Shown: positions 14,888 to 49,797 of the stretch, one piece after another
Numbering within the stretch: the first letter of the stretch is position 1
How the letters are laid out: the number at the start of each line of letters is the position of its first letter
Made by a program: the position numbers and the translations under genes
Origin: Podarcis muralis
Lineage: Eukaryota
Direction of reading: 5' to 3'
Assembly: GCF_964188315.1 (NCBI RefSeq)
Contig: NC_135659.1
Coordinates: 65,782,001-65,846,000, forward strand
DNA length: 64,000 nt
Notes under the pieces: model-generated
Databases searched by the model: none
What the model saw: the letters and a program-made list of their open reading frames with translations, nothing else
What the model was told of the DNA's origin: nothing

Positions 14888-15317
14888 TGTTGTTTAGTCG
14901 TTTAGTCATGTCCGACTCTTCGTGACCCCCTGGACCAGGGCACGCCAGGCACTTCTGTCTTCTACTGCCTCCCGCAGTTTGGTCAAACTCATGCTGATAG
15001 CTTCGAAGACACTATCTAACCATCTCGTCCTCTGTCGTCCCCTTCTCCTTGTGCCCTCCATCTTTCCCAACATCAGGGTCTTTTCCAGGGAGTCTTCTCT
15101 TCTCATGAGGTGGCCAAAGTATTGGAGCCTCAGCTTCAGGATCTGTCCTTCCAGTGAGCACTCAGGGCTGATTTCCTTAAGAATGGATAGATTTGATCTT
15201 CTTGCAGTCCATGGGACTCTCAAGAGTCTCCTCCAGCACCATAATTCCAAAGCATCAATTCTTCGGCAATCAGCCTTCTTTATGGTCCAGCTCTCACTTC
15301 CATACTTTACTACTGGG
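14888..15317 (-). mobile_element. Bov-B (RTE clade) LINE, 5'-truncated
   Basis: Encodes YGSESWTIKKADCRRIDALELWCWRRLLRVPWTARRSN...; 9-bp TSD AATAACAGT at 14879-14887 and 15318-15326. Confidence 0.96.
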
Positions 15318-15326
15318 AATAACAGT

Positions 15327-15334
15327 ATGTATGT

Positions 15335-15391
<57 letters not shown>

Positions 15392-15392
15392 T
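15327..15392. repeat. Compound (AC)n(AT)n(AC)n microsatellite
   Basis: Read directly. Confidence 0.95.
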
Positions 15393-15595
15393 ATACAGCA
15401 GTTGGATGATCTGATCCGCCTCAAAGAAAATTTTCTGGTCCACCAAGATTCCACCCGTTTTGCAATGGCAACAAAAGAGGGCAGGGGATGAAAGTACAGA
15501 AATTGCTTTGGGGGCAGGGGGTAGAGAGCCTGAGAGGGGTGAAAATCATCCATTCTCCTGTCATCAGATCCGTGATCTTCCAGAGCCTTCCAGAG

Positions 15596-22910: not shown

Positions 22911-24746
22911 ACAGCCCCAAACTCTCCAATCTTACTCATATTGACTTGGAAACAACTCTCACTGATTTCAGTGGGGGTGATTCTCATGCAGCTATAACAA
23001 AGGATAACATAATATAAGTTGACTGTGTCAGGCAAACAACCCTGAGTGGGGCAGGCATCTTCTCCCATATACTCCGTAATCCAACTGGCATTGTGTGTTG
23101 TTTCCCCAATATTACGAAGGAGAGGACAACTGAGCGGCTTGATACTTGTGTTTGCACCCATGGAGAACAAGGATTTTACCAACCTCTTAACACATTACTA
23201 CATTTTATTAACATTAACCTCAACACCCTGCCATTCTCCAAAGCCGTTCATATGTCATCAATATGTTTCCATGGTCTCCCAGCTAATATGAATAGCAATT
23301 CCACATGGAGCACAGGAGTGGCCCCATCAATGGGCAGGGTGAGGAGCCTGCATCACAGGGTACAAAGGGAAGCAAATTGTCAGTCGTTTAGCTTGTTACC
23401 AGTGAAATGGTTATCGTCTGGGGGGTTTTCTCCGTCAGGCACCAAAATATCTCAAACCATCCCTCTTAGCAAGGGGCTACCATACAGTATGCTGACAAAA
23501 TGCTTTTTAGAAAGTCTGCATCTGTTGCCTCTCTTTCTCATCTTTGTGATTCTGGACAGTTATTCTAGCTTCAAACCCTCAATCCAAATGCCAGGACAGA
23601 GAGGTCAGGCTCTGCAGTGCAACATGTTCTGTGATGGAATTCACTGATACAAGGAAAGCTTTCCAGAACATTATAAATTGCCGCAGATCCATTCTGTGCA
23701 GTGCTTCTCTTTCTCCTTTCGTTTGTAATAAAATTGTCAGCCAAGGAGAATTTGCACCATAAGAAGAGAAAAGCAAGCAAAGCAGCCAGCAGGAACTGCA
23801 GTCCAGGAAACATCTGTTGACTGATTCTGGAAAATAGCGACTCTGTGTATCTCAGAGATAAAGAAACTCGGTCCTTGACAACTGTGGTGTAGCTGAAAGG
23901 CAGAAAACTCAACCAGTTGTGGTGATAGCATTATACTAAGGAAATATGGGCTCCATCAGTCACATGCTGTTCCTTGTCATTACAACATTTCCCTATAGCA
24001 TCGAGAACCAAATGCAGAACTGCAGCTGAAGACTTACCAATGATGTGTTGAACTGTGTGCTTACCTTAGCCTTGGAAGTGTCGCTCTTTTTCATAAAACC
24101 TAAAATAACATTTGGCTTTTGTGCCACAGGATTTGAGGCTTCAGTCTCATTCAGCTGGTGCCCCCTTTAACTCATGAATCTTTCTCAAAAGTGCTTCACT
24201 ATACAAAATCTGGACTATGCATTTATCCAGCCTCATCTGCCTGGTGATTGGAAGGTAGTTGACACACAGCAAATTGTGTGTAGGCCACATTTCTGGTATG
24301 TAATATAAGGGAAATAATAACACACACTTGTGACCCACACATGGTTTCATTTTGTTCATTTTATTTAAAATGTGTGTTTCCATTAGCTCAAGGAGCCTAG
24401 CAAATCAGACACACAAAGAATATGCACATGACATTGTTTAAAAACAAAAAAAATAAAATAAACCAAGACCAGAATAGTCATTAAAAAAGAAGTAAAGTTG
24501 TTGAAATCTATCTCAAAACAGCCATGGATGCAACTTACGTCTCCACTGCCACTCAGTGAGCTGTTAGAGTACAATGGGTAACCACAATGTGATAATTTTT
24601 ATTTTCTTCTTACTAGCTGTTCCTCTGCCAAAGTTCTTTGAGTTTCAGAAGTATAAAAGTACAAACAACAAATAACCCACACCCACAAAACACATTGGGT
24701 TGTATTTAATTGACCTGACTACATTGGGTTGTATTCAGCTTAAGGT

Positions 24747-25294: not shown

Positions 25295-25470
25295 ATTTTA
25301 ATTATTTGTACCCTGCCCATCTGACTGGGTTGCCCCAGCCACTCTGGGCAGCTTCCATCATATACAGAAACATAATAAAACATCAGACATTACAAACTTC
25401 CCTATACAGGGTTGCCTTCAGATGTCTTCTAAAAGTTGTAGAGCTACTTATCTCCTTGACAAATCCAGCA
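25295..25470 (-). mobile_element. L2 LINE 3' end
   Basis: Same family as 57180-57335 and 59160-59520 (CCCAGCCACTCTGGGCAGCTTCCA). Confidence 0.8.
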
Positions 25471-26044
25471 CTGTCAGTTGGTTGCATTTTCAGACAGTTG
25501 CAATATGGGTTCCTGCTTATTTCTGAAGGCTACCATTTTTGCCAAAACTATACTTTGGATGCCAGCTACCACCAATTGCTCTGTGGGAAGAACAGGAGAT
25601 CAAGAAGGGCAGGTGGGGAAGTCACCACAGTTGGGCTGTTTTTGCCCTTCACTCCACATGGCCAAAAACCAGAAACTGTCCTGCGGTAAGGATCCCAGGA
25701 AAGCAAGGATGGCAGGTGAAGAAGACATCAGGAGCCTGCTGTTGCTCCGGCTGGAGTTTCTCCTCCACACACAGAGCCATCTTCTAACAGTTGGTCTCTT
25801 GGAAGGGCGCGGCCCCCTGACTTCTAATGTACTGCTATTGCTTACTGTGTCCTTTTTTAAGTGCCTTAAGTCACATGTAACTCACCTTATAAGGATTTGC
25901 ATCCTGAAAAGTGGGCTATAAATTATTGTATTTTTTAATGTTGTGTGTTTATTATTGCCTGTTGTGCACTTGGCAGGCAAATAGGTCATGGTGGAGGCTG
26001 GGGGTTGGTTTGAAGTCTATTGATGTCACAAAATGAAGTGTCAA

Positions 26045-26135
26045 GATTTGACGATGACCACTAGCTTAGATGGTTCCGAAACAGGATTAGACAAATTCAT
26101 GGGGGATAACACTCTCAATAGCTACTAGTCATGAG
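26045..26135 (+). mobile_element. CR1 3' fragment
   Basis: CACTAGCTTAGATGG...GGATTAGACAAATTCATGG, typical of reptile CR1 3' regions. Confidence 0.55.
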
Positions 26136-26589
26136 AACTATACAGAGCAGCAGCACACCAACAAATACAATCTTCCAGCGCTTTATTTTTCTGCAGAAAA
26201 TTTCCACCTCATAAGTTAATTAGTAGCGATGAATGGATGCCAACTGCAATTAAATATTATGCAAGCTTGGCGGTTCAAAGTTTGTAGCTTTGTTTACTAT
26301 ATACAAATAAAATAGGAAAGCTAAATTAGATACTCTCCCGAGCATTAGAAAATGTTCCAATGCAAATGACTCTAATTTCCATTTGGTAAGTTTTCCAGAA
26401 AACCCACATCACGGCTGGGAAGCGTACTCACATCCCACTTCTTTTCAGATGGACATAACTAAGGGCTCGTCCCCACTTCTGCATGTCCCATGACTAGAAT
26501 GGTTTTCCACTTGTCCCGTGACTTTCTAGGCACAGGTCCAATGAGTCTTTCATCTGTCCTGCCACTTTCCCCAGGAAAACCCACTTTTT

Positions 26590-28490
26590 TTTTTAAAATA
26601 AATTTTTATTGAGTTTTCAAAGTTTTATAACAAAAAACAAAAACAAACAAAACAAACAAAAACAAAACAAAACAAAAGCAAAAAGATTCTTTCATAACCC
26701 TCTTTCCTGACTTCCCCCCACCCCCACCCCATGCATCCCAATTCTCCTGTATAATTCAGCAAGTTCTTATTTCACTCCTTCAACCTGTTCTTGTTATACT
26801 TAAACTTAATTTCCTTTGCTAGGCCCAATTTAATTATCTAGTTCTCTTGTATACATTAAATCCATTTTCTAAGATCGATCCAGGTTCTTATACCATAAAT
26901 TTCCACTTTTTCATATTAGAATCTAGATTAAAATAATAAAACCCAAAAATCATAAGATGAAGTGAGATTTCCCCCCCCCCCCCTTCCTCCCTGCCCTGGT
27001 ATCTGTCCCTTCCCAGATCACTGTCCTCTTGTAGAACTCTTAGCCCGGATTTCTCACATCAGAGGCTTTTAAGTCCCTTTGAGTCTCTCTCCGCCTGTTC
27101 TGTTGGTAGTCCTTCCTGTAGGTCTCCAAGTCTCGAGGGATGTTAAACACAGTCTCTTCACCTTCTCTCCAATCACATTCCAATCGGATTTGCTGCCAGG
27201 GTTCTAGCAAAAGTTCCCCCAAATCACAGTCAGCAAGACCAGAAAAAAGGAGAAAGTCCCAGTTATGTTTCTTTATTCCTTTAGCTTTACCTCCATAGTG
27301 TCCGTAGGCTTTCTCCTTTGCTTTTCTTCTCTTGTAACTTGTAATCCAAAAGAGTTCTCTGTTCCCTGGCTGCACAAGTTCATATTCCTGCACTTTTTCC
27401 CCTCCAGACTCCTTTTCCACCAGCTCCAAAGATGTTTTTCCTGGTTCAGTTGTAAAATCTTTCAAAGTCGAGTCCTCACTCCCATCAGCAGAGTTGTTTA
27501 TTTTAGAGATCAAGGTCATCAGCTGCTTTTCCATAACCATCTCTTGCTCTTGTAGAGTTCCCACGAGAAAAAGAGTTCTTTCTATTTCTGCTAGTAGTTT
27601 TCCTTCTGCAACCATTGTAATATCACTGGTTCCCCCTAGGGGGATTTCCATTTTTCAAAGTTCAAAGTTTTTCAAAGTTCCTCACCAACAGTCCTGTACT
27701 TTATTGTTACTTGTTGTTACTTTATTTCCAGTCCCTTCTAGTTAAATGTAACACCTCTGTGTCAGAGAGATATAAGGATGTTCTTATCTTGATCTAGCCG
27801 TTTGACAGCTCAGTTGACAGCTGTCAAACTCCCGTTCTTTCGCGCTAAGTTAACACAGGACACTCCAGGGTCCCGGAGGGGGGGGGGGATCCATAAAAAC
27901 TTTTCAGAAAACACCTCTTCTCTCCAGCACAGCTTTAAGATAAAAAAGTAAAAACTTATTCTCACAAATTTATGGAGTCTCTTGTCAGTCCAAAAAGGCA
28001 CAAAAAGATTTTTTAATCCGATCTTAGGTTTTCGTTCCTTGCTTCCAATTGTCTGCATAAAAAGGGGGGGTGCGGACTTCCCTTTAGCACTACCCCCCCC
28101 CCCCCCCGTTCGTTCCAGATTAGGGATATTAATTTCTTCTAAAGTCCGAATTTCATTCTACTTACGGGGTATTTGTTTCCAATCCAATTGTCGGGAAAAA
28201 AGTTGACGCTCTCCGGCAATGGCTTGCGGCTTCGCTCCGCTGAGGTAGCGGTCTACTCTCAGCACCACGCCACTCCTCGTACCTTCTCCGCAGCCTTTAA
28301 AAAGGCTCTTCGACTGTCAAGGAGGGCGCTTAAGGTGCCCACCGAGTCACCAAGTCCACAGGCATCCGCGTCTGTGGTTTCTGAGGGTCCCCGCGTCGCC
28401 GGCACGGTAAGACCCGTCCTCAGCAGAGCCGATTCCCTCCGGAGCTCGGAGGGAATCCGCCATTAGCCGATCGCGTCAACCCGGAAGTCC
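26590..28490 (-). mobile_element. L1-mobilised non-autonomous retroelement, apparently intact 5' end, no ORF2
   Basis: 16-bp TSD GGAAAACCCACTTTTT at 26574-26589 and 28491-28506; target nick TTTTT/A; minus strand starts GGACTTCCGG, has a CpG-rich 5' region and ends AATAAA plus poly(A). Confidence 0.88.
27040..27651 (-). CDS. 203-aa ORF of unknown function inside the L1-like element (ORF1 position)
   Basis: Open frame, AAAATGG Kozak context, TAA stop; Glu/Lys-rich with possible coiled coil; no L1 ORF1 RRM, endonuclease or RT motif recognised. Confidence 0.55.
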   Translation of the reverse strand: MEIPLGGTSDITMVAEGKLLAEIERTLFLVGTLQEQEMVMEKQLMTLISKINNSADGSEDSTLKDFTTEPGKTSLELVEKESGGEKVQEYELVQPGNRELFWITSYKRRKAKEKAYGHYGGKAKGIKKHNWDFLLFSGLADCDLGELLLEPWQQIRLECDWREGEETVFNIPRDLETYRKDYQQNRRRETQRDLKASDVRNPG

Positions 28491-28807
28491 GGAAAACCCA
28501 CTTTTTACCACTGAAGACTTTACCCTCCTCTATTCAGGGCTCCCAAACCAGTAAAGATTGTTGGTGATCACAGGTCTTCTGCATTTTAATGGACAGATTT
28601 ATGTCTGAGGATTACTTAGGTGTCTCTCTTGCCCTTAAAACTACAAACCTGGCCTGGCAAGTAGTTTTTTTGAAAGCAGCTTTTAGGCAGGCTGGGAAGT
28701 GAGGTTTTAATGACGAAACAAATGTGCAGGGATGACCCGCTCTGTGTGTCTATATTTCCATGAATGTATGCTCACCTGAGTGATTGATGTCTATGTGAAT
28801 GAGTTCT

Positions 28808-28808
<1 letters not shown>

Positions 28809-28848
<40 letters not shown>
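28809..28848. repeat. (GT)n microsatellite
   Basis: Read directly. Confidence 0.95.
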
Positions 28849-28850
<2 letters not shown>

Positions 28851-29480
28851 TGCCGGATTTACGTATAAGCTAAAGAAGCTATAGCTTAGGGCCCCACTCT
28901 CTTGGGGGCCCCAAAAAAATTTAAAGGGAAAAAAACCTACAGTGTGGACTACTATGGTGATATTGATATTATATTTTTAAAATGCATTGTATTAACTACA
29001 ATTGCATTGTACAGGTTATAACACTTAATTTCATATTAATAAAGCTATTTATTAGTAGTTTGCATCATATATTTACACCTATTATTATTTCATGTTATAG
29101 CAAGTTTATAGAGACTAGATTATGAGTCTCTGTAAATTGTGTTTCTAAAGGAACTTTTGTTATTGCCAAATGCCAATGTGTTTGCATTATTAAGTTTGTT
29201 ATGAATAAAAAATCATTTTAAGTTAGAGCTTAATAATTATTTCACTATTAATATACTTCTTCTTAATTGTATTTCAGTTCAACAATTACTTTGATAAAAT
29301 ACATATTTTGTCATGTGCAAATGGCATTAGATACCTATTAGGTCCATAAATTACCATGTAGCATATATTCAAACACACACAAAAAGAGACAATTTGTTGT
29401 TGACAAAGGACAGCTGGACATATAAAGGGCCTCATTACCTTCCGTAGCTTAGGGCCTCATCAAACCTAAATCTGACCCTG
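28848..29480 (-). mobile_element. hAT-type MITE (long form of the 41013 family)
   Basis: TIRs TAGTGCCGGATTT / AAATCTGACCCTG; 8-bp TSD TGTGTGTG / TGTGTGCG; both ends match 41013-41390 in inverted orientation. Confidence 0.85.
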
Positions 29481-31551
29481 TGTGTGCGACTGCCTCCAGT
29501 CACTCCTAATGGCATGTGGCCTCCAACCAACAATGCACACCTCTCATGTGGCCTACAGGGCCAAAAAGGTTGCCCATTCACCCCATCATATGACTTCCTT
29601 GTTCTGTAGATGGCTACAGCAGACAGTGGCTGAAGAAAACCATGATTCATATGTATCTATAGCTTGTGTTTCTAGAATGGTTATCATGGAAGTTGGGCTG
29701 TCACACAGAATAAATCATTACAGCCTTGTAGAGTTATTAAGCTTTTATAGCATGCTCTCTCCACAATCATACCTCCAGGTGTTGTGTAACTAGACAAATT
29801 TGTTTATTATGCTTTCTCATTCCAGTTTCCTTTTCATTAGCCCCTTTGCTATTGAAGAAGCCTTCCTGAATAACATTTATTTATTTTGCACATCCTGGCT
29901 TGACCATGCTTGATATTAATGGTGTGCAGTAACCACAAAAATTACATTGAATCTGTATCTGCTGTGTTTGGGAGAAACCCAGCCTGTTTCGGAACTGCTC
30001 TGTGTTGTTCTGATTCAATTTATTCTTTGGGTCTAAATCTATTAAATTTGAAGCTTTGTTTTGTCCCCATTGACTACACTGAGGAATCTAAAAATGGTTA
30101 TAACTTTCCCCCCTTTCAAGATAAATGGATGAAATTTGTAGGCAAATCCCTTCAGAGTGGACTACGCCCTCCAAATTTCAGACAGGTACATTCAGGATCA
30201 TTCCTGCAGAAATATTTTAATGTTTATTTTAAAAGAAAGAATGTCTCACTTTTAATTTTCTGCCAGAATTTGATGCCAGTCACAAGCCCTTCAAAGGGAA
30301 TGAAGCCTGTCAAATTTCATAAGATAGGTGTAGCAGTTCTCCCCCAAGGGCAACCTTATGGAAAACAGAATTCACATTCAGGCCTCTAAATATCTTGGGG
30401 AAATCAATTTGAAAACTGGATATGAGGGATTGCCCTTGGGTAAGAAATCTGCCCATGTTCAGACAAATAATTCTCGTGGCTATTAGGAGCTAGGTGATTT
30501 TACCTTCATTTTTTAAAAATAATAATCTGGGAAAGTCCTTTTTTGTTGCCTTTGGCACCCAACCCTAACTTCCTGGAAGCAGCTTTCATGAAGAAAAAAG
30601 AGAGAGTGCTATGATTTTAACTGTTTGTTAGGAAAAATAAAATTGGGAAAGAGGTTGGCTCTCCCCAAAGTCTAATCCTGCCACATATGCCCTGCTCTCA
30701 GAGCCAAATCTTGGAGAATGATGGCTACCCAAGTAAATAGCAACACTGCTTACTTCAGCATTTCTCCTCCAAATCACTGTGACTGGGATGCACTGGGAAA
30801 ATAAATCTGATTAAAAAGTAGACCTGTCAGATGATCCCTCAATTCTCCACCTCCTCCCCTCTTGAGCATTTTCCTGGTCAGCTTGGTTTTGTTTTTCAGG
30901 AAAGGGAAAGGACGTCATTCATTTAACCTTCTGGAAAAAATGAGGCAACAGAGCATTGTTAACAGTGCATTCTGACTTGGGAATATGAGAGTCCGGCCGG
31001 AATCATCCTAGTTCACCTCAGTTGGGGTACAGGCGTAGCTGTTGCATACCCCTACTTAATATACAGATCAGGATTACTATTTCCATAACAAAGATGACAC
31101 AACAGTGTGATGTAGTACAAGGTTTTGGTCACAGGGTGGAGGTACACATTCACAGAAATGGTTCTCAAAATCTTTACAAGATCTGCAAGCTGTAACTGTC
31201 CAAACAAGTGACTAGATTTAGTATCACAGTTAGGTTGGCTTGCAAAATATTTCGATTGGCATTTCCTTTTCAGGGAATTAATTATTGTTTAAAAGATTTG
31301 GACTGATAGCAGGAGAGGGGGGTCTCCATTAAATCTTGGGAATAGTTTATAATACTCTGTCTTATAATGCACAAGTGCTGGGAAAGCACATATACAAAAC
31401 TAGGTTTGAAAGCTGGAGATATTTGGGCTTTGCAAGTTATTCTAACAAGTGGTCAGATATATTTTATTGCCTTTTTGGTTGCTAATGTTCTTTTCTGACA
31501 TTTGTAATTTGATTTTCAGTATCAGGAAGGCTTTCTTGAAATTGTTAAATC

Positions 31552-35529: not shown

Positions 35530-36390
35530 AAGAGTGTGGGGGGAGTGCAGTCCAAGTGTCTCGAGGTGGTGCCAACCTCAATGGTGTCCACTAGAGCGAC
35601 TATAAATGCGCTCAGGAAGCTATTTGCGACACACGGCTTTCCAGACACACTGGTGAGTGATAATGGGACTGCTTTTACTTCAAGGAAATTGTAATCAAGA
35701 ATGGAATCCACCACATTCGTTCTGCTCCTTTTCACCCGGCCACTAACGGCCAAGCTGAACACATGGTCCGTACTACCAAAAATGAGCTTAGGTGCATAGT
35801 GCATCGAGACTGGACTTTCCAGTTAGTTCTTATGACCCCAAGAGCAGTGACCAGTTGGAGACCGGTGGAGTTGCTTATGAGGAGGAGGCTCACTACCCTC
35901 CTTGATCGTGTGCACCCCAACTGGACTCTTGAGCAACGGCCATCCACTGTGGTGTGGGGGGCTCCAAGAGGGTTCTCCCCGGGGGACACTGTGTACATCC
36001 GAAACTATGGGCCCGGACAGGGTTGGGTCCCTGGTATCATTGCCCACTGTACAGGTCCGGTTTCCTATGAGGTAGGGTTGGAGGGGGGACTGGTTTGGAA
36101 GAGACACCTTGACCAGATCAGAGCCAGGGCACTTCCGAACACGGAACTTCAAGGGGAACCAGAGGACAGAGAAATGGGTACTTTGGGAGATTCTGTGCCA
36201 GGCCAGGGTGGGAACCAGAAGGGTTGCCGGTGACTGAGTTACCCCAGCAGGGTGACTTCAGGCCGGAATCCTCAGTGGCTCCATCAGCAGTGACCCCTCC
36301 CTGACTGTCCCACTCAGACCGTGGGTACCAGAGGAACCTCCTGGGTCACCCACTTGGGCACAGGAACCATGACGGTTGAGGAACTTATAC
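35530..36390 (+). mobile_element. Ty3/Gypsy integrase relic
   Basis: LFATHGFPDTLVSDNGTAFTS, then across a stop/frameshift RSAPFHPATNGQAE and FSPGDTVYIRNY...GPVSYEV...WKRHLDQIR; no LTR pair seen. Confidence 0.88.
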
Positions 36391-45634: not shown

Positions 45635-45732
45635 TGCTGAGTGGATGACTGCATATTTTTGGACTCTGAGAAAGGTTTGAAAACTCCTTCTCCTGTTAGT
45701 GTAATTTTTTGTGGGTCTGGAAGAGTTCCAGA

Positions 45733-48700
45733 ATGGTTGACCGGGTTCCTGAAGCTGAGAAGGCTCTGGTCTTCCCACAGCTAACAGATGAGAACTATAG
45801 TTTATGGTCTTTTCGGGTGGAGGCGCTTTTGACCTCTAGAGAAGTATGGACCTATGTAACTGATGACCCTCCTAACCCTGTGACTAATGCTTGGTCGAAA
45901 GGAGATGCAAAAGCCAGGGCGATAATTAATTTGGCAGTCAGCGACCAGCAAGTAGTCTATATAAGAAATAAGAAAACTGCCAAAGAAATGTGGGACAGTC
46001 TTGCAGCAGTGCATGTTAGAAAAGAGTCAGCATCTGCATTGACGTTTTTCAAGCAGTTGTACCAGACGAAGTTGCAGCCTGGTGGTGATTTGGCAGCACA
46101 CTTGAGACGTCTGGAGGCAATACGCGGCGAATTAATTCGAAGGGACATGGTGATACCTGATATTCAGTATGTTTTTATCATCCTTTGTTCCCTTAATGAG
46201 GACTTTGATGGTATAGCTAGCCAGATATCTGCTGTTCCACCAGCACAATTAACTGTGGAAGGGGTAACGGCAAGATTAATGGGCGAGTTGGATAGAAGGG
46301 AGGCTTGTGCCATAAGCACTCCTATTTCCAGAAAGAATGAGGAACGCCATATGCAAACCTGTGGTGATACAACTGCATTTAAAGCTGCAAAGCGTTGTTG
46401 GTTCTGCAATAAGCAAGGACATTTTGCAAAGGACTGCAGAGCCAAAAGAAAGCAAAGTACTCCCAAGTCTGTTTCTGTTCGTCAGTCACGGTTGTCAGCC
46501 CAACAGCAGACATCGTATAGTAAAGACAGAAACGAGCCGCGAGCTTTTCATGCTTGGACTACAAATCGTAAAAGAATTAAAGATGCCAAGTGGAAGTCTT
46601 TTATTATAGACTCTGGAGCATCTCAGCACATCTGCAATGATCGAAGCTTGTTTATTTCTTTCGAAGAGGAAATTGGTAATGTACATTTAGCCAATTCACA
46701 AGTCTTGCAGTCGCTTGGCAGAGGTACTGTTAAACTTGACTCTTTAAACATTACAATAGCAAACTGCATTTACTGCCCGTCAGTGGACAATTTATTGTCA
46801 GTAAGGTGCTTTGCTCGTCAAGGCATAACTGTGCGTTTCTTAAAATCAATGTGTGAGTTTTTTGATGGGAACAAACGTTTATTGTATGCCCGGGACTCTG
46901 ATGGTTTATATAGACTGTATTTTCGCACCTACTCCCAATCGCCTATAAATTGCAGAGCAGCACAGTCAAGCCAGGGGTTGAGGAATGTAAGGCCTCATTC
47001 CGGGTGTGTCCATGAGGCGCACAGAATTCTGGGACACCTGAATTTTGCTGATGTAGTTAAGACAAAGAATATCGTTAATGGCCTCAACTTAAAACCATGT
47101 AAATTCTTTATGCAATGTCTATCCTGTTGCAAGAATAAGATTAAGGTTGCACGCAAGGGTAGGTGCTCAGATAGGAAAGTAACTGAACCATTTGAGCGTG
47201 TACATTGTGATTTAGTTGGGCCACTCCCACCATCATTAGGAGGTTCTAAGTACTGGCTTACTCTGATAGACCAGTATAGTAGATACTGTTGGACTTATGC
47301 AATAGCTGAGAAGTCCCAAGCATTTGAAAAGTATAAAGTTTTTTGCAACTGGGTAAAAATGCACTTTAACAAACCAATTAAGAACCTGTTTTCTGACCGG
47401 GGCGGGGAATTTGTTTCTGAGGATTTTGAGAAATTCCTGGAAGCGCAGGGGACTACTCATGAGTTATCTTGCCCCCGAAGTCCCTGGCAAAATGGGCTTG
47501 TTGAAGTTGTGCAGCGTGACCTACAGGCAGGGGTTAAAACGTATCTGCATGATGCTAATCTGCCCAAAGACTTTTGGGCTGAAGCACTTAATGCATTTTG
47601 TTACGTTAGAAATCGCAGTTATCATACTAGTTTAGATGTCACCCCCTATGAGAAACTGTTTAAAAAACGCCCTAATCTGAAATACCTCCGCATTTGGGGT
47701 TCAGATGTAATTATGCATTATCCTGCTAAGCAAAAATTGGGTGAACGTAGCGTCCAGGGAAAATTAATGGGCTACCAGCAGGGGGCGTACAGAATTTACA
47801 TACCAGCAACTGGCAAATTTCATATTACCAGAAGCATGATACAAACTGTAAATTGGAATGGAGTTGCTGTCTTCCAAGATACTGATGGTATAGATAATAC
47901 TGAGGAAGAAGAGGAAGAAACAGCAGAAGAAGCAGCAGGAAATAGTGCTTCTGAATTAATGGGAAAAGACAAAAAGCCTGTTGAGTCTGATAAATTGTTT
48001 GATGATTTAAAGTCACAGGCACCCGAGGGGAGGTTAGATTCTCTTGATTTTTCTGACCGAGAGCTTAGCCTACAGGCACCTCTTCAATCTGACAATGATT
48101 TACAACCTGAAACTAGTGGTTTACTTAGTCCCATTAAGTCTGAGAAGTCTGACTCTCCTTCTGGACTGAGACGTTCAGATAGAAAGAGACAGAAGCCACA
48201 ACGATTTGCAGATGAACATTTTAATACTGTGTATGCCAATAAGGTAGTTTTTGAGCCAAAAAGCTACAGTGATGTTCAGAAATTACCTAAGCAACAAGCT
48301 GCAAATTGGTATAAAGCTATGAACTCCGAGATAGCTTCTTTAAAAGAGCATAACACTTGGTCTCTTGTACCACAAACCCCAGATATGAGACTTATTGATT
48401 CGAAATGGGTTTATAGAGTTAAAACGAATGACAAAAATGAAGTTGTAAGGTACAAAGCAAGATTAGTTGCTAGGGGTTTTCAACAAATTCCAGGCGAAGA
48501 TTATGATTTGTGTTATTCACCAAGCGTAAAATATGAAACAGTTAAGCTTTTGTTAAAAGATGCATCACAGCGTGGACATTCCGTTTATCACCTAGATATA
48601 AAAACTGCATATTTGTTTGCAGATTTAAAAGAACAAATTTTTATGCGTGTTCCTGAAGGCATAGACGCCGCTGAAGGTTTGGTATGCAAATTAAACAAAT

Positions 48701-49797
48701 CCCTTTATGGTCTGCACCAAAGTGGAAGGAATTGGCACCAAACTTTAGCAAAAGAATTGCTGGATATTGGTTTTTCACAAGGAAAGGCAGACAATTGTGT
48801 GTTCATAAAGGAAAGGGCAAACTCTGTAACAAAAATATGTGTGTATGTAGATGACGTATTAATTTCTACAAAAACTAAACAGGAATATGAACAGGTGGTA
48901 TCACAGTTACAGAAGAAATTTGATGTAGTGGAATTAGGCATAGCTAAAAATTACTTATCCATGCAAATTGAGAAAGGCAAAAATGGATCTTTTCTGGTTC
49001 ATCAAACTGCAAAAATTGATGATCTTGTTGAAATGCTATGTTTAGAAAATGCAAATGGGAAGGAAACACCTATGGTGTGTGGTTTCACCTTTACAGGTGA
49101 AGACAAGCCATTTCCTAACAAAACTTTGTATCGTTCTGCTATAGGCAAGCTAAATTTCATTCAAAGAATCTCAAGACCAGATATAACTTATGCTTTTCAC
49201 TTTCTGGCAAAATTTGTGGAAAAGCCTACTACACAATGTTTCTCTGCTCTTAAGAGAGTGGTAATGTACCTTAAACATACCAAACATTATAGGTTGCAGT
49301 TTACAACATGTATTGACAAAGGTTTTGAAATTTTCTGCGATGCATCTCATGCAATGGAACAAAATAATTGCAGGGGTGTGTCTGGTATGGTGTTTTGTTA
49401 TAACGGTTGTCCATTTGAATGGAAGTCCCAAACACAAACCATTATTTGTCTCTCCACAACAGAAAGTGAATTATGTGCATGCGTTCAGGCCACTCGTGAT
49501 GTAGAATGGTATCTGCAAGTGTTTGCAGACCTACAGATGCAAGTAACACTACCAGTAAAAGTTTACCTTGATTCCCAGAGTGGACTTGCTATCCTGTGCT
49601 CAGAGACCAATACGCAGCGCACTAGAGTCTTAAGGTTACGTTTAGAATTTGTAAAGCAACTAATTGCTGATGAAATGGTTGTATTTGAATATGTTCCTGG
49701 TGACAGTCAAATTGCGGACATTTTTACAAAAGCACTTCCAAAGGTTACACATGAAAAACATGTACAAAGTATGCTTTATGTTTTTGTTCCACAATGA
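45733..49797 (+). CDS. Copia gag-pol polyprotein, 1354 aa
   Basis: ATG at 45733; CCHC knuckle CWFCNKQGHFAKDC, protease IIDSGAS, IN HHCC and D-D(35)E (HCD, SDRGGEF, NGLVE), RT YKARLVARGF and YVDD, RNase H FCDAS/STTESE/ADIFTK; no stops. Confidence 0.98.
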   Translation: MVDRVPEAEKALVFPQLTDENYSLWSFRVEALLTSREVWTYVTDDPPNPVTNAWSKGDAKARAIINLAVSDQQVVYIRNKKTAKEMWDSLAAVHVRKESASALTFFKQLYQTKLQPGGDLAAHLRRLEAIRGELIRRDMVIPDIQYVFIILCSLNEDFDGIASQISAVPPAQLTVEGVTARLMGELDRREACAISTPISRKNEERHMQTCGDTTAFKAAKRCWFCNKQGHFAKDCRAKRKQSTPKSVSVRQSRLSAQQQTSYSKDRNEPRAFHAWTTNRKRIKDAKWKSFIIDSGASQHICNDRSLFISFEEEIGNVHLANSQVLQSLGRGTVKLDSLNITIANCIYCPSVDNLLSVRCFARQGITVRFLKSMCEFFDGNKRLLYARDSDGLYRLYFRTYSQSPINCRAAQSSQGLRNVRPHSGCVHEAHRILGHLNFADVVKTKNIVNGLNLKPCKFFMQCLSCCKNKIKVARKGRCSDRKVTEPFERVHCDLVGPLPPSLGGSKYWLTLIDQYSRYCWTYAIAEKSQAFEKYKVFCNWVKMHFNKPIKNLFSDRGGEFVSEDFEKFLEAQGTTHELSCPRSPWQNGLVEVVQRDLQAGVKTYLHDANLPKDFWAEALNAFCYVRNRSYHTSLDVTPYEKLFKKRPNLKYLRIWGSDVIMHYPAKQKLGERSVQGKLMGYQQGAYRIYIPATGKFHITRSMIQTVNWNGVAVFQDTDGIDNTEEEEEETAEEAAGNSASELMGKDKKPVESDKLFDDLKSQAPEGRLDSLDFSDRELSLQAPLQSDNDLQPETSGLLSPIKSEKSDSPSGLRRSDRKRQKPQRFADEHFNTVYANKVVFEPKSYSDVQKLPKQQAANWYKAMNSEIASLKEHNTWSLVPQTPDMRLIDSKWVYRVKTNDKNEVVRYKARLVARGFQQIPGEDYDLCYSPSVKYETVKLLLKDASQRGHSVYHLDIKTAYLFADLKEQIFMRVPEGIDAAEGLVCKLNKSLYGLHQSGRNWHQTLAKELLDIGFSQGKADNCVFIKERANSVTKICVYVDDVLISTKTKQEYEQVVSQLQKKFDVVELGIAKNYLSMQIEKGKNGSFLVHQTAKIDDLVEMLCLENANGKETPMVCGFTFTGEDKPFPNKTLYRSAIGKLNFIQRISRPDITYAFHFLAKFVEKPTTQCFSALKRVVMYLKHTKHYRLQFTTCIDKGFEIFCDASHAMEQNNCRGVSGMVFCYNGCPFEWKSQTQTIICLSTTESELCACVQATRDVEWYLQVFADLQMQVTLPVKVYLDSQSGLAILCSETNTQRTRVLRLRLEFVKQLIADEMVVFEYVPGDSQIADIFTKALPKVTHEKHVQSMLYVFVPQ

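Follow-up and report, generated by a model that had tools for sequence, protein, structure and literature searches.

A probable L1-mobilised retroposon family of Podarcis that lacks ORF2 and keeps a single 203-codon reading frame

The 64,000-nucleotide (nt) stretch of Podarcis muralis DNA analyzed here (contig NC_135659.1, positions 65,782,001 to 65,846,000 of the forward strand; hereafter, the window) carries on its minus strand, at 26590-28490, a 1,901-nt retroelement with a single open reading frame (ORF) of 203 codons, flanked by perfect 16-bp target-site duplications (TSDs). The element has no ORF2, and hence neither an endonuclease nor a reverse transcriptase of its own, and the other copies that we find are collinear with it. 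The insertion is young and polymorphic, other copies of the family are transcribed, and the encoded protein has no detectable homology to L1 proteins. We consider it probable that the insertion belongs to a non-autonomous, L1-mobilised, protein-coding retroposon family of Podarcis that works in the manner of mammalian HAL1. The initial annotation of the window had regarded the unit as the copy of a complete short RNA rather than a 5'-truncated L1, as a family member rather than a one-off product, and as the carrier of an ORF unlike canonical ORF1; all three points are borne out by the results below, the first by an L1-type terminus and an AATAAA/A tail lying inside one TSD and by an exact empty site elsewhere, the second by collinear copies at 4-5 times single-copy depth in an animal without this insertion and by a Podarcis lilfordi subfamily spread over at least six chromosomes, and the third by searches that returned neither Transposase_22 nor any other match in Pfam, the Protein Data Bank (PDB) or among L1 proteins.

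Results

Anatomy of the Insertion

The element and its borders are made up of the following features, given in window coordinates, where UTR stands for untranslated region and o/e for the observed/expected ratio.

26574-26589, strand not assigned: TSD copy at the 3' end of the element (GGAAAACCCACTTTTT), an exact 16-mer
26590-26595, minus strand: short poly(A) tail of 6 A, or 11 with the 5 A of the TSD included
26590-27039, minus strand: 3' UTR of 450 nt, CpG o/e 0.11, with G runs present
26605-26610, minus strand: AATAAA polyadenylation signal (sense position 1881), separated from the A run by about 10 nt
27040-27651, minus strand: single ORF of 203 codons plus TAA (27042-27040), start context AAAATGG
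27652-28490, minus strand: 5' leader of 839 nt, 48% GC, 41 CpG, five upstream AUGs
28320-28470, minus strand: leader portion with matches of at least 90% identity to very abundant sequence of the genome, from summed contig depth
28458-28490, minus strand: L1-type 5' terminus (G, GACTTCCGG, 17 nt, ATGGCG), from a motif-pair search
28490-28481, minus strand: 5' end of the element, reading GGACTTCCGG
28491-28506, strand not assigned: TSD copy at the 5' end of the element (GGAAAACCCACTTTTT), with the putative first-strand nick between 28506 and 28507 (TTTTT/AC)

The 16-mer GGAAAACCCACTTTTT has two matches in the 64-kb window, against 0.03 expected, and two matches were reached in 0 of 100 shuffles, so the duplication is not a chance event. 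On the plus strand of the window the target reads TTTTT/AC, and the first nick would therefore have been made at TTTTT/A, which is a site of the type cut by the L1 endonuclease. The process that follows such a nick, target-primed reverse transcription (TPRT), is summarized in PMC5381506. Within the unit, no sense-strand ORF longer than 100 residues is present besides the 203-codon one, which is followed directly by the 450-nt 3' UTR and the tail. The sense strand of the ORF is A-rich (34.6% A), with several internal AATAAA on the coding strand, and the 3' UTR contains a T/G-rich, (TTTTG)n-like repeat at about 26625-26687. Rfam and tRNA scans of the element gave no match, and hence there is no SINE-like (short interspersed nuclear element) polymerase III head. 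ORFs of 82 and 97 residues in the leader were considered as genes and rejected.

Most of this anatomy had been claimed in the initial annotation and is recovered here: the perfect 16-bp TSD, whose two exact copies are the only ones in the window; the TTTTT/A nick site, seen as TTTTT/AC in the strand that was primed; the 5' start, found at 28490-28481; the strong Kozak context of the 203-codon ORF (AAAATGG at 27651); some 450 nt of 3' sequence with AATAAA (450 nt, signal at 26610-26605); and the poly(A), present although only 6-11 A long. The five upstream AUGs had not been noted there. The claim of a CpG-rich leader of about 840 nt stands as regards length (839 nt) but is too broad as regards composition. 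CpG o/e over the whole leader is 0.85, compared with 0.19 in the flanks, and the leader is CpG-rich only in an island over its first ~350 nt (about 28140-28490) and in a second, smaller cluster at ~600-700 nt (about 27790-27890).

As a separate observation, the leader contains a palindromic motif at 27798-27832 (minus strand; TTTGACAGCTGTCAA, repeated as ...GAGCTGTCAAA), which may be a conserved regulatory or RNA-structure element.

The Ends of the Element Resemble Those of Lizard L1s

The pair formed by GACTTCCGG and ATGGCG has a single match in the 64 kb, with 0 expected, and that match falls exactly at the element terminus. The consensus for the 5' extremity of Anolis clade-1 L1s is GACTTCCGGTGN8ATGGCG (Boissinot and Sookdeo, 2016; PMC5381506), and zebrafish L1s start with GGACTTCCGGTT (PMC5381506). 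According to the same study, the 5' UTRs of Anolis clade-1 L1s are ~1.3 kb long, with 45% GC, ~56 CpG and two CpG islands 300-400 bp apart, the first ~120 bp being conserved, and the 3' UTRs of lizard L1s contain poly-C, poly-T or T-rich repeats, with G tracts in a few families and an AATAAA and poly(A) end in all (PMC5381506). The element thus shares with lizard L1 clade 1 (Anolis L1_AC) the GACTTCCGG...ATGGCG terminus, a long leader with two CpG clusters and about 45%-48% GC, an A-rich sense strand with internal AATAAA, and a repeat-rich 3' UTR that ends in AATAAA and poly(A). It also shares the low copy number, the young polymorphic insertions and the presence of many divergent lineages side by side. 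Unlike these L1s, the element has no ORF2, its ORF encodes 203 residues with neither the RNA recognition motif (RRM) nor the C-terminal domain (CTD) of ORF1 proteins, its leader measures 839 nt rather than ~1.3 kb, and the spacer between GACTTCCGG and ATGGCG is about 17-19 nt instead of the 10 in the clade-1 consensus.

Read depth provides a further pointer. In the bin 28320-28470, summed contig depth reaches 24,794 in public run X1 and 13,694 in run X3, compared with 11-16 in the single-copy flanks, and part of the first 170 nt of the leader is therefore common to something that is present hundreds to thousands of times. Inside the 64-kb window, there is neither another copy of the element nor any L1 piece similar to it. 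The ends of the element are probably of L1 origin.

An Empty Site and Copies Elsewhere

Contigs of three public runs (X1, X3 and X12) and the raw reads of the RNA run X23 were mapped to 25300-29800 of the window. The exact empty site is present in X3, where record 18, a contig of 738 nt at depth 13, passes from 26176-26573 straight into 28491-28800 with one copy of the TSD. At least one other animal with the same species label therefore lacks the insertion. In X1, the flanking contigs end at or in the TSD, the right-flank contig having 16 extra letters that are unlike the element, and no contig joining flank to element is found among those listed. The X3 empty-site haplotype differs at 9 of 310 positions over 28491-28800, compared with 1 of about 400 on the other flank, so that the haplotype carrying the insertion shows clear divergence on one of its two sides.

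Beside the site, single-copy contig depth is 11.3-16.1 in X1 and 8.9-13 in X3, compared with 50.5, 63.2 and 69.1 (X1) and 53.5 and 61.7 (X3) for contigs internal to the element. Because X3 has the empty site here, its element contigs come from other loci; they are collinear with the window copy over 26585-27422 and 27450-28232, with ~1% differences. Contigs from other copies or from RNA end or begin at the A tail at 26585 (X3 record 19, X12 record 9), and in four X12 contigs the homology to the element stops exactly at 28490. X1, X3 and X12 share a recurrent set of differences from the window copy, which implies that a majority sequence exists and that the window copy is a slightly different member. 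With contig depth as a proxy, these values indicate about four to five near-identical copies per genome, plus older ones. Among the other relatives are a 93%-identical contig at single-copy depth and a more abundant, diverged variant with the joint 27646>27798 (depth 167-191), which matches from the start codon (27646) and retains of the leader only the 35-nt palindrome (27798-27832).

The family is also seen in a second species, the only annotated relatives of the ORF being "hypothetical predicted proteins" of P. lilfordi. At 90% identity or more, these form a cluster of six distinct sequences under at least seven accessions, encoded on chromosomes of 137, 123, 103, 98 and 63 Mb. P0013 is encoded on a chromosome of 89.6 Mb, and the subfamily occupies at least six chromosomes. 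P0029 (194 residues) is intact, from MAADG... to ...ASDVRNPG, and P0025 matches it starting at an internal Met; the C terminus is altered in P0023, P0026-P0028 are truncated and P0013 is fused to foreign ends. Such near-identical copies, intact and broken, on many chromosomes make up the picture of a young mobile family. The identity of the P. lilfordi subfamily to the window protein is only 39%-46%, which, if the window genome is taken as Podarcis, suggests that one genus harbors deeply diverged lineages side by side, in the manner of the L1 families of lizards (PMC5381506).

Copies Other Than the Window Copy Are Transcribed

In X12, a probable RNA run (148 Mb of contigs), 26585-28452 is covered at a depth of 213-330, with one contig beginning at the A tail, and depth is zero in the bins of unique flank (25602-26054, 26357-26507 and 28622-28772). 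In X23, a single-cell RNA sequencing run of which ~6% was read, depth inside the element is 1-3, and at position 27116 the majority letter, not that of the window copy, is found in seven of seven reads. Copies other than the window copy are therefore certainly expressed.

The 203-Residue Protein

A Pfam search with the 203-residue product gave no family at E-values up to 1, and the PDB holds no relative. When 13 members of the family were searched against Pfam at E-values up to 10, only scattered single noise hits were obtained, none of them to Transposase_22, and a family profile run against the PDB returned nothing meaningful and no L1 ORF1p. A word-based search yielded four Logan proteins (201-214 residues, 40%-65% identity), and an exhaustive HMMER profile search of 1.84 billion representatives gave 11 hits, namely ten orphans of 129-215 residues and one repeat artefact, with no L1 ORF1 or ORF2 protein among them. 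The artefact, a fibronectin-like gar protein (P0012), was rejected as a relative, and a profile word search added P0022-P0024. The N-terminal 60 residues used alone as a query recovered family members only and no L1 protein, a metagenome scan for relatives of the ORF found none, and the best Protein Atlas scores, 0.80-0.84 (DUF4806, BEN), are at chance level. Altogether, the ORF has about 25 relatives of 170-215 residues at 25%-69% identity and is otherwise an orphan.

In the alignments of the family, conservation is found in an N-terminal segment, where G31, L33 and Q34 are shared by at least 90% of the sequences, and in the last ~30 residues (KDYQQNRRRGTERDLRASDVRNPG-stop), which form a basic C-terminal tail ending in ASDVRNPG. 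The middle of the protein is full of indels, highly variable and probably disordered. AlphaFold models reach a mean confidence (pLDDT, predicted local distance difference test) of 42 with 5 sequences and 49 with 26, the latter being confident only for a helix at residues 9-54 (pLDDT 82-86). In the sequence of this helix, hydrophobic residues recur at roughly heptad spacing (L19, I23, L27, V30, L33, M40, L44, L47 and I51). The protein is thus modeled as a coiled-coil-like, amphipathic N-terminal helix plus a basic tail, with no RRM or CTD. In sequence searches and in the model, the combination of coiled coil, RRM and CTD that marks an ORF1p homologue is not found in the 203-residue product, and the coiled coil of ORF1 may be the remote source of the N-terminal helix. 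Since the frame stays open and keeps its length among relatives with as little as 25% identity, its coding capacity seems to have been under selection, in a sample in which databases show predicted ORFs only and broken copies are under-sampled.

It may be noted that the tail ...RASDVRNPG-stop (27043-27066, minus strand) is the most conserved part of the family. A 2A "StopGo" motif (D[VI]ExNPGP) was considered for it and rejected: DVRNPG-stop is one residue short and lacks the Pro, and the N varies among homologues (N/D/S).

Discussion

Relation to Known Systems

L1 derivatives that lack ORF2 but retain a single ORF are already known from mammals as HAL1 (half-L1), a kind of element defined in PMC5753468 with reference to Smit (1999) and to Bao and Jurka (2010). 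HAL1 is a non-autonomous L1 derivative of ~2 kb, as the lizard element probably is, and it likewise has an L1-type 5' end, one ORF, a polyadenylated 3' end, no ORF2 and L1-type TSDs; it is mobilized by L1, as we propose for the lizard element, and it arose several times independently. HAL1 encodes a recognizable ORF1p, whereas the lizard ORF has no detectable ORF1 RRM or CTD and no match to an L1 protein. We do not file the lizard element as a HAL1, because the ORF1p homologue that defines HAL1 was looked for and not found. The papers that were searched describe no HAL1 in lizards, and the searchable literature, which does not include Repbase, holds no description of a lizard family of this kind.

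Two other classes of elements invite comparison. Processed retrogenes and composite retroposons of the SVA type are copied in trans by L1 ORF2p, as we propose for the lizard element, and likewise have poly(A) and TSDs; they differ in that processed retrogenes stem from a parent gene with introns and lack an L1 promoter end and that SVA is non-coding. HeT-A of Drosophila is a telomeric element of the Jockey clade of non-LTR (long terminal repeat) retrotransposons whose Gag has zinc knuckles. Like the lizard element, it encodes only a Gag-like protein and is supplied with reverse transcriptase in trans; it differs in its unrelated sequence, its targeting to telomeres, its membership of the Jockey clade and the zinc knuckles of its Gag.

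A Model for Mobilization

From the anatomy of the insertion and from what is known of L1 biology, we infer a cycle in which transcription would start from an L1-type internal promoter at the 5' terminus, where the ETS-like GACTTCCGG and a YY1-like ATGGCGG lie within the CpG island, and the RNA would be polyadenylated at the element's own AATAAA. A full-length L1 would then provide the ORF2 protein that reverse transcribes the whole 1.9-kb RNA in trans, and TPRT at the TTTTT/A nick would leave the 16-bp duplication. L1 would thus supply the enzyme and the leader would serve as the promoter. Because the 203-residue protein is conserved, and by analogy with HAL1 ORF1p and HeT-A Gag, we propose that it acts in cis on its own RNA, in particle formation and in access to L1 ORF2p.

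A bolder proposal, which we put forward tentatively and regard as possible though on balance doubtful, is that the protein is not a decayed ORF1 but a distinct, long-maintained protein that a lineage of hyperparasites of L1 needs, acting either as a minimal "gag" that coats its own RNA or through a helix that assembles together with L1 ORF1p and so gains entry to L1 particles or poisons them. If this is true, the element would parasitize or modulate L1 while encoding a protein, and lacertid genomes would contain several deep lineages of it side by side.

Alternative Explanations

Rather than a retroposon, the insertion could be a processed retrocopy of a squamate-specific orphan host gene that is highly expressed in the germ line and whose mRNA has been copied repeatedly by L1. 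Such an origin is consistent with the mRNA-like structure (leader, one ORF, 3' UTR, AATAAA, A tail and TSD), with the expression of the element, with the small size of the protein family (about 25 sequences), and with the ETS and YY1 sites near the start, which are also found in host CpG-island promoters. It is nevertheless unlikely in our judgment, since the conserved L1 start is reproduced at the exact first bases and since, in an animal that lacks the insertion, DNA contigs collinear with the RNA (26585-27422 and 27450-28232) occur at 4-5 times single-copy depth and end at the A tail; among those listed, the DNA contigs are intronless in all cases. The near-identical and partly broken P. 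lilfordi copies on at least six chromosomes and the deeply diverged lineages (39%-46% identity) within one genus likewise speak for a mobile element, and no annotated squamate gene appears among the hits apart from the "hypothetical predicted proteins" of P. lilfordi. Transcription and a long-retained open frame whose N- and C-terminal segments are near-invariant at 25%-69% identity would also be expected if such an element had been domesticated into a host gene family, for instance with a germ line or anti-L1 role, the insertion then being a by-product retrocopy. This, too, seems improbable to us: the insertion is polymorphic, the broken near-identical copies fit a mobile family, the middle of the protein is highly variable, and no fixed orthologous locus came to light, with no search of lizard genomes made for one. 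The L1-type 5' terminus and tail are also what a one-off internal deletion of a full-length L1 would show if its 5' UTR had been joined to its 3' end and the ORF were there by chance. With the same internal structure present in other copies and in RNA, full-length homologues of the ORF down to 25% identity and no part that matches L1 ORF1 or ORF2, this explanation is close to refuted and hardly credible.

Several observations weigh against our preferred reading, that of an L1-mobilised family working like HAL1, and are best considered together. The A tail is very short, 6-11 A according to whether the 5 A in the TSD are included, and five upstream AUGs precede the 203-codon ORF. For the link to L1, the evidence consists of a bipartite motif of 15 bases, read depth and the architecture as a whole; the most abundant part of the leader is found within 28320-28470 rather than at the extreme end, and it may belong to another repeat. 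Copy number was estimated from contig k-mer depth rather than by counting loci. An intron-bearing parent gene may exist, the contigs listed being part of the total. Finally, the listed differences between the window ORF and the majority copy comprise four synonymous and four non-synonymous changes, and because the rate of difference in the ORF is not below that in the UTRs, constraint is not apparent at so shallow a depth.

Implications

L1 proteins favor the RNA that encoded them. How elements without ORF2 compete for ORF2p is a mechanistic question, for which the lizard family offers a natural minimal system: one may ask what a cis-encoded protein must do for mobilization in trans when the RRM and CTD have been dropped and a helix and a basic tail have been kept. 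Parasites of the half-L1 type would not be confined to mammals, the present one being found in a genome with diverse, low-copy and currently active L1s. For annotation, the "hypothetical predicted proteins" of P. lilfordi that are of the ORF type should be recognized as element encoded.

Other Features of the Window

Upstream of the element in window coordinates, a repeat at 25300-25450 has a summed depth of more than 1,000,000 in DNA contigs and of 46,864 in the probable RNA run; because its loose ends are A/T-rich and tail-like, it is probably the end of a SINE. On the other side, a (TG)n run at 28809-28849 stands beside a repeat resembling a miniature inverted-repeat transposable element (28860-29480), with inverted ends of the type GCTTAGGGCC... 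/ ...GGCCCTAAGC and an AT-rich interior of ~330 nt. Summed over genomic contigs, depth at the ends of this repeat comes to 130,000-330,000, and many of its other copies skip ~320-350 nt (joints 28904>29241-29251), so that the window copy either has an extra internal piece or is a long variant.

Further ORFs of 156-215 residues that have no Pfam family lie at 14906-15553 (both strands, a 215-residue ORF overlapping one of 189 residues on the opposite strand), 23093-23647, 29910-30389 and 35763-36233; none of these ORFs in the window is related to the 203-residue protein. At 45709-49797, on the plus strand, the window contains an open Copia-type polyprotein of 1,362 residues with the domains Retrotran_gag_2, Pol_BBD, rve, SH3_retrovirus and RVT_2, at E-values from 1e-13 to 2e-62.

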